Assembly: GCF_000143415.4 (NCBI RefSeq)
Contig: NW_003314283.1
Span: forward strand, 985,734-1,049,733
Source of the DNA: Selaginella moellendorffii
Lineage: Eukaryota; Plantae; Lycopodiophyta
Reading direction: 5' to 3'
DNA: 64,000 nt
Each line of letters opens with the position of its first letter. Position 1 is the stretch's first letter. The notes below the pieces were generated by a model. It searched no databases, was not told the origin of the DNA, and saw only the letters and a program-made list of their open reading frames with translations. The position numbers were made by a program, and so were the translations under genes. Positions 22,373-26,817 of this stretch are shown piece after piece.

Positions 22373-23260
22373 ATGGCCGGGGACGAAGATCGAAATCACG
22401 GCAGCTCCATTGTCAAGTCTCCCAGCGAAACTCTCCAAATTCTCGCTTCAAAGTTCGACAGCCTCCACATGCTCTCGGCCACGGCAGGATTTCGGCTATG
22501 GATATGGAAGGACTCGATCCAAAACACTCTCCAGCAGCTCCAGCAGCTAGGCAAGAACAACACCTCCAAAGTCAGGCAAGCTTCATGTGAAAACTCTCTA
22601 GGAATCGCTGACAGTGAAAACTCGAGCATAAGTTATCTCCAGCAGCTAGGCAAGAACAGCACCTCCAAAGTCAGGCAAGCTCCATCTGAAAACTCTCTAG
22701 GAATCTCTGACAGTGAAAACTCGAGCATAAGTTCTCTAGCAGCGAGCTCCTCAGGCCAGGAAATCCCGGACAGTGGCTGCCTCGTGATGCCGCCATTCTC
22801 CCCTTACTCGGCCACAGTTCCATGGCACACTGGAACCCGAGCTATTCTTTCGCAGATCTTTCCAAAGTATGGGAACTACTGCGGACCAAACTGGTCGAGC
22901 GGTCGACAAAAAGGATCACTGGTTTGGGACGTACCTCCGGTGGACTGGCTGGATTACTGCTGCTTCAAGCACGACGTTGGCTACGACAGCCATAGCCAGG
23001 AAGATCTCTACAAGGCCGACTTGGAGCTTTTGGAGTGTTTGCGAAGGATGCCACGAGAGAGGCTAGGGCCACACAATCCGAGTGGATTTGTGCGGGAGTT
23101 CTATCGAAGCGTGTGCACTCTGGGTAAGAATGATTTTTTTTTTTTTTCCTGAAGATAGAACCAAAAAAACTATGAATCTTTGTTTTGGAAATCAGGACTG
23201 GAGCGGTTTCTGATACCGTACAGAAGGACGATACTGAGGCAGCAGCGTAGAGTCAAGTGA
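22373..23260 (+). CDS. Phospholipase A2-family protein; exons 22373-23123 and 23196-23260
   Basis: YGNYCGPNWSSG Ca-loop-like motif and DWLDYCCFKHDVGYD (HD dyad); the GT-AG intron gives C-terminal GLERFLIPYRR. Confidence 0.85.
22538..22735 (+). repeat. 99-bp in-frame tandem duplication in the PLA2 N-terminal region
   Basis: LQQLGKN(N/S)TSKVRQA(SC/PS)ENSLGI(A/S)DSENSSIS occurs twice; units start at 22538 and 22637. Confidence 0.9.
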
Positions 23261-25376: not shown

Positions 25377-25660
25377 GACTAGCTGCTACCACTACCGATC
25401 ACACGCGATGCTAGCGCCCCTGCTGTGGCTCCCCCATGGCTCCTCATCAATCAAACGCTTGGCGGCGATCGTGGCGGCGGCGGCAGTGGAGAGGAGGAGG
25501 AAGAGGGCGGGCTCCGAGACTCGGCTCTCATCCAACGCTGCTTTGCCGCCGCCCTAGAATGCACCATGGAACATTCCGTTAGCGTTTCAAAAATAATATT
25601 CCGTTGTTCTATTAGCTTCCATACCTTTTTTAATGTTTTAAATGAGCATAGTTTTCACTT

Positions 25661-25740
25661 GTTGCCACGTGTACCCTAAAATAACATCTTCTGCCACGTA
25701 TGCCCTAAATCCATCATGTTGCCACGTGTGCCCTAATTTC
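25661..25740 (+). promoter_or_regulatory. Three tandem G-box/ABRE-like units followed by CCCTAA
   Basis: TGCCACGTGTACCCTAA, TGCCACGTATGCCCTAA and TGCCACGTGTGCCCTAA at ~28-29 nt spacing, followed by a TATA-like TCTATATA. Confidence 0.6.
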
Positions 25741-25785
25741 TATCTATATACACTCTTTTAGGGTTGTTTTGGAGGAGGGAGTGAG

Positions 25786-26546
25786 ATGGGCCGACTAGCG
25801 GAAGAGGGCATCAAGCAGTTTGGCGTGAGCGCCTTTGGCGAGGCTACAAAGCCGGAGTTGCTGGGAGCCATCTGCCTCGGTCTTCGGATCCCGCACGCCG
25901 TGGTCTTCTGCAACACTGAATCAGCGGTAAGTCTTTGGGTTCTTTGTTCTGTCATTTGAAATGGGAGCTGATTCTCCACCAGTGCAAATTTCTGGCCACA
26001 CGATTGCGCCGAGAGAACTTGAGCGCTCTCGTTCTCCCTGGCATGCCTCCCGACGAGCGAGCAGACGCTATTGACCAATTTGTGAGCTACGACGTCAATA
26101 TTTTGGTCACAACGGGTGCTTGGCCACAGGATTTACCCGTGGAAAGTGTAAGCTCCTTCCTTTTCCTTTTCCTTTCCCTTTCTTCTCTTCTTACATGGCT
26201 TCCCACCAGGCGGAAGTGGTCTACATGTACGACTTTCCTGAGAGCAGCGACTCCTACGTGAAGCAGATTGGGGAGTGCGACAAACCTGGCGTCCGAGAGG
26301 TACTCTCTTTCCGAATTCTCTTCCAATCGGCTTCCAAGTGGTTCTTGGGAACAGGCTTTGGTGATCACGTTTGTTCGAGATTTCCAAGACTCATGGCGGG
26401 AGCGTCTCGAGGCCGAGTGCTGCACCCGTATTGAGCCTCTCCCTGAGCACATCACCGGCCTCTACCGCCGCTGCTTCCCTATTGTGGTGACCCCTGCGGC
26501 CTGGAACTCCATTCAAAAGCTGGCCAAAAAACACGGTTTGCTGTAG
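25786..26546 (+). CDS. Stand-alone DEAD-box helicase C-terminal (RecA2) domain, eIF4A-III-like, 195 aa, degenerate motifs V/VI; exons 25786-25926, 25983-26147, 26210-26299, 26355-26546
   Basis: Three phase-0 GT-AG introns give an uninterrupted ORF: EGIKQF...VVFCNT...G.MPPDER...F...ILVTTGAW...YDFP..SYVKQIG...VITFV...IEPLP, collinear with the eIF4A C-terminal domain. Confidence 0.82.
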
Positions 26547-26817
26547 AGGGTAGCGTTGCAAATTGTTACAAGAGCCTAAGTTGTAAGGCAAAGGATGATA
26601 AAATGATTTTGCAACTTTGAAGAGGAATTCTGCAATTTCAAACATCTGATTCACTTTCCAATCAAAATCCTTACCACCTTTACCACCCACCCTTTACACC
26701 TTTAGCACCTTTACACCCTACCACCTTTAGAGAGAAGGCTTAATTGGCTAATGATAATATAAAAAACACATGTACTCGAGAAAAAGTTCTCATTATATCA
26801 TATACAGCTCTTTGGTT

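Follow-up and report, generated by a model that had tools for sequence, protein, structure and literature searches.

Gene content of the locus

The window analysed here is a single stretch of 64,000 nt (64 kb) from the genome of Selaginella moellendorffii. On its forward strand, at 25786–26546, four exons and three phase-0 GT..AG introns, with zero internal stops, make up a gene for a 195-aa protein (Table 1). All four exons have lengths divisible by 3. The model is identical, letter for letter, to the database record SELMODRAFT_442170 (XP_002973556.1, EFJ25216.1, UniRef100_D8RRB7; P0002), which is located on scaffold GL377587.1, the scaffold of the window, and so the gene had already been annotated. 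Gene model and record together bear out the first-pass annotation in its description of four exons, three phase-0 introns and an intact frame of 195 aa. The start codon has a purine at −3 and a G at +4, and is preceded by an in-frame TAG 27 nt upstream.

The order of genes is unchanged on a second scaffold, GL377593.1, which is the second assembled haplotype. Its allele is SELMODRAFT_415783 (P0001, 128 aa). The open frame around exon 2, used as query in a word search, led to a protein cluster of two records, which are the two alleles. One source names the first allele ‘eukaryotic initiation factor 4A-III homolog’ and one source names the second ‘ATP-dependent RNA helicase WM6’; both automatic names are unreliable. 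The SELMODRAFT identifiers of the alleles were not found in the literature, nor in the supplements of two Selaginella expression studies.

The gene stands between a divergent AP2/ERF gene and a convergent geranylgeranyl-reductase-like gene, both intronless. The product of the former contains long Gly and Ala runs. The stop codon of the latter is ∼270 nt from that of the gene between them, and its length differs by 3 nt between the haplotypes. In the 3′ flank (26670–26735) there are CACCTTTAC-type repeats, with a length difference of 22 nt between the haplotypes. Further upstream, an annotated gene at ∼22373–23260 (+), with no Pfam match, encodes 271 aa here compared with just 92 aa for the other haplotype. 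Within the 64-kb window no paralog of the gene was found. Capture by a transposon was considered and rejected, inverted repeats not having been found in the gene's flanks.

The 409-nt region shared with the ERF gene contains three 20-nt direct repeats, and 3 of 3 copies occur in the other haplotype as well. From their core motifs they may be promoter elements, and are listed as candidates for such a function.

Table 1. Coordinates of the gene, its neighbours and associated features in the window
Feature	Position	Strand	Description
AP2/ERF gene, intronless, 155 aa	24909–25376	−	AP2 E 3e-14; start 409 nt upstream of the gene, divergent
Three 20-nt direct repeats, TGTTGCCACGTGTRCCCTAA type	25660–25736		Spacing 28–29 nt; CACGTG / ACGTGGC (G-box/ABRE-like) core, then CCCTAA
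TATATA, TATA-like	25745–25750	+	36–41 nt upstream of ATG; present in other haplotype; read from sequence
Exon 1	25786–25926	+	Codons 1–47; linker, first strand (EGIKQF), motif IV region (AVVFCNT)
16 nt missing in other haplotype (GL377593.1)	25894–25909	+	Codons 37–41 (HAVVF) and one base lost; frameshift
Intron 1	25927–25982	+	56 nt, GT..AG, phase 0; splice sites same in other haplotype
Exon 2	25983–26147	+	Codons 48–102; MPPDER, degenerate motif V (TTGAWPQDLP)
Intron 2	26148–26209	+	62 nt, GT..AG, phase 0; haplotypes differ by indels
Exon 3	26210–26299	+	Codons 103–132; degenerate motif VI (KQIGECDKPG)
Intron 3	26300–26354	+	55 nt, GT..AG, phase 0
Exon 4	26355–26546	+	Codons 133–195 and stop; final RecA2 strand/helices, then ∼27-aa tail (YRRCFPIVVTPAAWNSIQKLAKKHGLL)
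Geranylgeranyl-reductase-like gene, intronless, 500 aa	26818–28320	−	FAD_binding_3, GGR_cat; convergent

A RecA2 domain that has lost its catalytic motifs

Whole-protein searches used the database record of the 195-aa protein as query, and the exons were also searched singly. The whole protein matches Pfam Helicase_C over residues 32–123 with 39.2 bits, above the cut-off of 23.5, in a check that had been proposed with the first-pass annotation; it has no match to the Pfam DEAD domain. In the sequences of the PDB, the best matches are to the ‘probable eIF4A’ chain of 9if7 (3.5e-20), to yeast eIF4A (1.7e-17) and to human eIF4A-III (2.3e-17), with weaker ones to DDX39B (∼1e-13) and human eIF4A-I (∼1e-10). 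Exon-by-exon searches returned marginal matches only (E 0.016–0.12), and exon 4 chance matches only. Residue 4 aligns with human eIF4A-III at position 246 and with yeast eIF4A at position 228, in the linker at the start of RecA2, where the first-pass annotation had placed the beginning of the protein, at the eIF4A interdomain linker. From there the alignment extends to residue 167–168, ending two or three residues short of the eIF4A C-terminus. The C-terminal tail of ∼27 aa that follows is absent from every eIF4A-family relative in the alignment.

The RecA1 half, with the Q motif and motifs I, Ia, Ib, II (DEAD) and III, is absent from the protein. It had been argued that there is no room for a DEAD domain in front of the gene, given the divergent ERF gene, and this stands: the ERF gene starts 409 nt away, and no DEAD domain was found in the 64 kb searched with 23100–23180 masked. 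When 28 full-length eIF4A-like proteins were compared with the window by tblastn, the RecA2 exons were the sole matches, and no RecA1/DEAD remnant was found on either strand (23100–23180 masked).

Within RecA2, the losses are concentrated in the catalytic motifs. Motif V reads TTGAWPQDLP, against TTD(V/L)(W/L)ARGID in the family, and motif VI reads KQIGECDKPG, against HRIGRSGRFG, the changes being D92G, R96Q, G97D, D99P, H120K, R121Q, R124E, G126D and R127K. Motif IV (FCNT), the strand cores and Y118/I122/G123 are retained. Counted over the 43 columns that are at least 80% conserved in the family, 23 are kept; in members of the family the median is 40 and the lowest number 24. Thirteen of the 14 hydrophobic conserved columns are still hydrophobic, against 12 of 29 kept among the polar, Gly and Pro columns, with motifs V and VI the sites of clustered loss. 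Judged by this pattern of substitutions, the hydrophobic core of the fold is preserved and the catalytic chemistry is gone. As the residues by which motifs V and VI contact ATP and RNA have been lost, the product cannot be a helicase, and the earlier description of the protein as catalytically dead is upheld by the motifs.

The predicted structures are those of a RecA2 domain. The AlphaFold2 model reached a pLDDT of 85.6 with an alignment of 68 RecA2 domains, that is, of true helicases, while prediction from the single sequence was poor (pLDDT 53.7). The ESM Atlas model of the 195-aa protein has a pTM of 0.76. Foldseek TM values of the AlphaFold2 model to RecA2 domains are 0.72–0.78, and its top match is an isolated EIF4A3 RecA2 chain (6yvh_H; TM 0.72/0.86). 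From these models the protein would be expected to fold.

Relatives and position in the eIF4A family

Among 1.84 billion cluster representatives there is none with more than 34% identity to the protein besides its own allele, and the best foreign match in the cluster-representative search scores 92.6 bits, where the allele scores 290. Neither there nor in a word search was an ortholog found in other species. Short kin, sought by word search among proteins of 107–341 aa, were limited to the protein's own cluster, and Selaginella was the source of 0 among the 20 best matches with sources looked up. For two of the relatives, P0018 and P0015, the source is a metagenome contig without introns. About 12 clusters at 50% identity (P0025, P0033, P0034, P0036, P0042, P0047, P0049, P0050, P0053, P0059, P0061 and P0116) consist of proteins of 190–407 aa in which an intact eIF4A-type RecA2 begins at residue 23–26, with no DEAD domain in 3 of 3 scanned. 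Their looked-up members come from metagenome or Logan contigs, and are probably gene calls that were cut by introns.

In a tree of 80 RecA2 domains, without plant eIF4A, the terminal branch of the protein has 3.58 changes per site, about 8 times the median of 0.46, and no supported group includes it. At 13 columns diagnostic for eIF4A-III versus eIF4A-I, in a sample again without plant eIF4A, 2 match III (including the Trp), 2 match I and 9 match neither. The sequence FCNT is common in I-type sequences as well. In the PDB sequence search the scores are 66 bits for human eIF4A-III, 46 bits for human eIF4A-I and 67 bits for yeast eIF4A. Scores from HMMs of the two groups (79 bits for I-type, 65 bits for III-type) were discarded because the groups were of unequal size (28 and 6). 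By sequence, then, the protein is a member of the eIF4A family, but not one assignable to eIF4A-III over eIF4A-I. The opposite claim, that it belongs to eIF4A-III rather than eIF4A-I, had been made at first and is not sustained by a tree without supported placement, by columns divided among III, I and neither, or by alleles named after different helicases.

Comparison of the two haplotypes

The two assembled haplotypes (GL377587.1 and GL377593.1) were aligned across the gene and its flanks. The 569 aligned coding bases contain 11 substitutions, 8 synonymous and 3 nonsynonymous, giving a dS of 0.062, a dN of 0.007 and, from these 11 substitutions only, a dN/dS of 0.11. The corresponding values for the neighbouring genes are 0.084 for the geranylgeranyl reductase and 0.107 for the ERF gene (3 synonymous and 1 nonsynonymous). 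The probability of the synonymous excess arising by chance is 0.0008–0.005 depending on transition bias, and ∼0.004 with the ts:tv ratio of the flanks. Exons have diverged by 1.9%, against 4.9% for introns and flanks (P 0.003). The haplotypes do not differ at any of the six splice sites, and indels other than that of exon 1 are confined to non-coding DNA. The evidence for purifying selection on the reading frame during haplotype divergence is thus real, though thin. It agrees with the earlier proposal that the intact frame reflects selection, a dN/dS near 1 not having been seen.

The indel of exon 1 is a deletion of 16 bp, and the codons that it removes (37–41, HAVVF) form the motif IV strand. 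Owing to this frameshift, the annotated product of the other allele is 128 aa long and starts at Met68, in exon 2. The deletion allele was not found to contain another splice site by which its frame would be restored. The first-pass annotation had given disruption in the other haplotype, in advance, as an observation that would count as refuting, and for exon 1 such disruption is what the deletion has caused. As regards pseudogene status, the analysed haplotype is intact with a dN/dS of 0.11, and the other is disrupted in frame in exon 1. Given the low dN/dS, the deletion is either recent relative to the split of the haplotypes or an assembly error. The plant that was sequenced carries a probable null allele in the heterozygous state, which implies that the gene is dispensable in one dose.

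Expression signals

In 20 runs from 9 studies, a share of 0.12–0.64 of the sampled words of 25560–26800 was present, no run being recorded as RNA. These shares, along with small contig totals, make up the pattern expected from spliced mRNA plus the 3′ UTR of the neighbouring gene, where the run types are guessed. The protein collection holds no transcript-derived copy of the 195-aa protein.

Residues at known partner surfaces

MIF4G partners are anchored mainly by RecA2 (PMC4482076), and RecA2 domains on their own are known to serve as docking platforms (PDB 6yvh, 4crw, 2wax, 6s8s). Several of the contacts have been mapped by mutation. In eIF4A3, D270K/D273K abolishes CWC22 binding (PMC4482076), and in eIF4A1 the single mutation E268R, or the quadruple mutation D265R/E268K/D296A/T298K, strongly reduces binding of eIF4G (PMC7470955). 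In the alignment, eIF4A3 D270/D273 and eIF4A1 D265/E268 are the same positions, occupied by A28 and L31 in the Selaginella protein. The eIF4G contacts D296/T298 of eIF4A1 (PMC7470955) correspond to N59 and S61. A further double mutant of eIF4A3, D401K/E402R, forms no EJC (PMC4268817); these two positions, which contact MAGOH-Y14, correspond to E159 and P160.

Origin and possible role of the gene

The explanation that we favour, by a modest degree, is that the gene is a lineage-specific remnant of a helicase gene, a pseudo-helicase that is probably functional and whose work, if it does any, would be that of a non-enzymatic binding module. Its ancestor, an eIF4A-family DEAD-box helicase gene, would have lost its entire N-terminal RecA1 (DEAD) half, and very fast divergence would then have followed, leaving a gene restricted to Selaginella. 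The product would be a stand-alone RecA2 domain that has retained its hydrophobic core and acquired a new tail of ∼27 aa, and it may act by binding other proteins, with no enzymatic activity. In view of the purifying selection on the coding sequence, the protein is most likely made, its expression being deduced from that selection, and most likely functional. Since the contact residues for CWC22, eIF4G and MAGOH-Y14 have changed, its partners are probably not these canonical ones.

The main rival, a possible reading although clearly the less probable one, is that the gene is being lost, and is a functionless relic of a partial duplication with its frame open on one haplotype and broken on the other. 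The frameshift deletion of the sister haplotype would be expected of such a relic, as would the failure to find orthologs elsewhere, by word search or among the 1.84 billion cluster representatives, the long terminal branch (3.58 against a family median of 0.46 changes per site), the loss of catalytic motifs and partner-contact residues, and unconfirmed expression; RecA2-only eIF4A fragments annotated as genes are also known elsewhere, for example the EIF4A3 retrocopy in swift LOC104396871. However, a dN/dS of 0.11 matches that of the bona fide neighbours, and the exons have diverged less than half as much as non-coding DNA. The splice sites are intact on both haplotypes, the hydrophobic core has been retained selectively, and neutral decay to 30% identity should already have closed a frame of 585 nt. 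It is most improbable that the 195-aa model covers just the 3′ portion of some longer gene, with DEAD-domain exons further upstream. A possible acceptor (ctcttttag|G) does lie in frame 24 nt before the ATG, but unless splicing occurs there, the frame is closed by an in-frame TAG at the same site, the upstream space is filled by the divergent ERF gene, RecA1-like coding sequence was found on neither strand of the 64 kb (23100–23180 masked), and both genome annotations start inside the unit at 25786–26546.

The role first suggested for the protein was that of a catalytically dead, microProtein-like decoy, holding MAGO-Y14 or CWC22 (EJC/NMD), or eIF4G/MA3 partners (translation), by means of the canonical RecA2 surfaces. 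The anchoring of MIF4G partners by RecA2 (PMC4482076; PDB 6yvh, 4c9b, 2vso, 4crw), the predicted retention of the fold with catalysis dead, and the selection on the sequence are all in keeping with such a role, and at the second eIF4G-contact site N59 and S61 resemble N301 and T303 of eIF4A-III. Against this, A28 and L31 replace both the D270/D273 pair on which CWC22 depends (PMC4482076) and the D265/E268 pair of eIF4A1 for eIF4G (PMC7470955), while E159 and P160 replace D401/E402, required for the EJC (PMC4268817); nor do the tree and the diagnostic columns support an assignment to eIF4A-III. With most of the mutation-sensitive positions for CWC22, eIF4G and MAGOH-Y14 replaced, a canonical EJC or eIF4F decoy is distinctly unlikely, and the first-pass proposal of a dead EJC/NMD or translation decoy is weakened by the changes of D270 to A28, D273 to L31 and E402 to P160. 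A new partner for the RecA2-only protein is possible, if purely conjectural. Its fullest form is unlikely: a selected pseudo-RecA2 that would bind such a partner through the changed helix (A28/L31) and the new tail, that may be coregulated with the ERF gene through the triple G-box/ABRE-like repeat, and that would act as a lycophyte-specific, stress-linked modulator of a step dependent on an RNA helicase.

Relation to known systems

Members of the eIF4A family (eIF4A-I/II, eIF4A-III/DDX48, yeast Tif1) share homology with the protein over RecA2 from end to end, at 27–34% identity and with the same predicted fold. In contrast to these, the Selaginella protein has neither RecA1 nor ARGID nor HRIGRSGR, and adds the ∼27-aa tail. 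The pseudohelicases offer a likeness of another kind. Utp25 (PMC9539457) and the C. elegans pseudohelicase at the centre of the CPUG complex (bioRxiv 10.64898/2026.09.04.749402) are examples of a helicase fold that has lost its catalytic motifs and whose role would be to bind or to serve as a scaffold. By name, however, both are similar to whole helicases, whereas the Selaginella protein is a single RecA2 with no known complex.

Plant microProteins are small single-domain paralogs that titrate their multi-domain relatives or partners, as in the case of the tomato sAFP3 isoform (bioRxiv 10.1101/2025.06.18.660365). The Selaginella protein resembles them in being one interaction-capable domain derived from a larger family, but it is larger (195 aa), has not kept the canonical partner-contact residues, and any interaction would be a putative one. 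The swift Chaetura pelagica likewise has an eIF4A-type RecA2 without the DEAD half in a predicted gene, LOC104396871 (P0022). There, however, the RecA2 is a retrocopy of EIF4A3 that lacks introns, is near-identical to its source and has motifs that are almost intact, while the Selaginella gene has three introns, ∼30% identity to any relative, and purifying selection. The swift model (420 aa, 33 kb; KN127213.1, L003:32168-32674) ends in a single-exon, near-perfect EIF4A3 RecA2 with DVCARG for DVWARG, and has the look of a fragment of a retrocopy to which unrelated exons have been joined upstream.

At present this is one species-restricted gene with one broken allele, and the value of the analysis lies in a corrected reading of its family, of the decoy idea and of the names given to its alleles. 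If the reading with a new partner were true, the gene would be the first known to encode a microProtein-like regulator derived from a helicase. Should the protein prove to be made and under selection, it would show that one half of a DEAD-box helicase is able to persist by itself as a module without catalysis, and the gene would provide a small test case, set by nature, of the ways in which pseudoenzyme domains acquire partners that are new to them.
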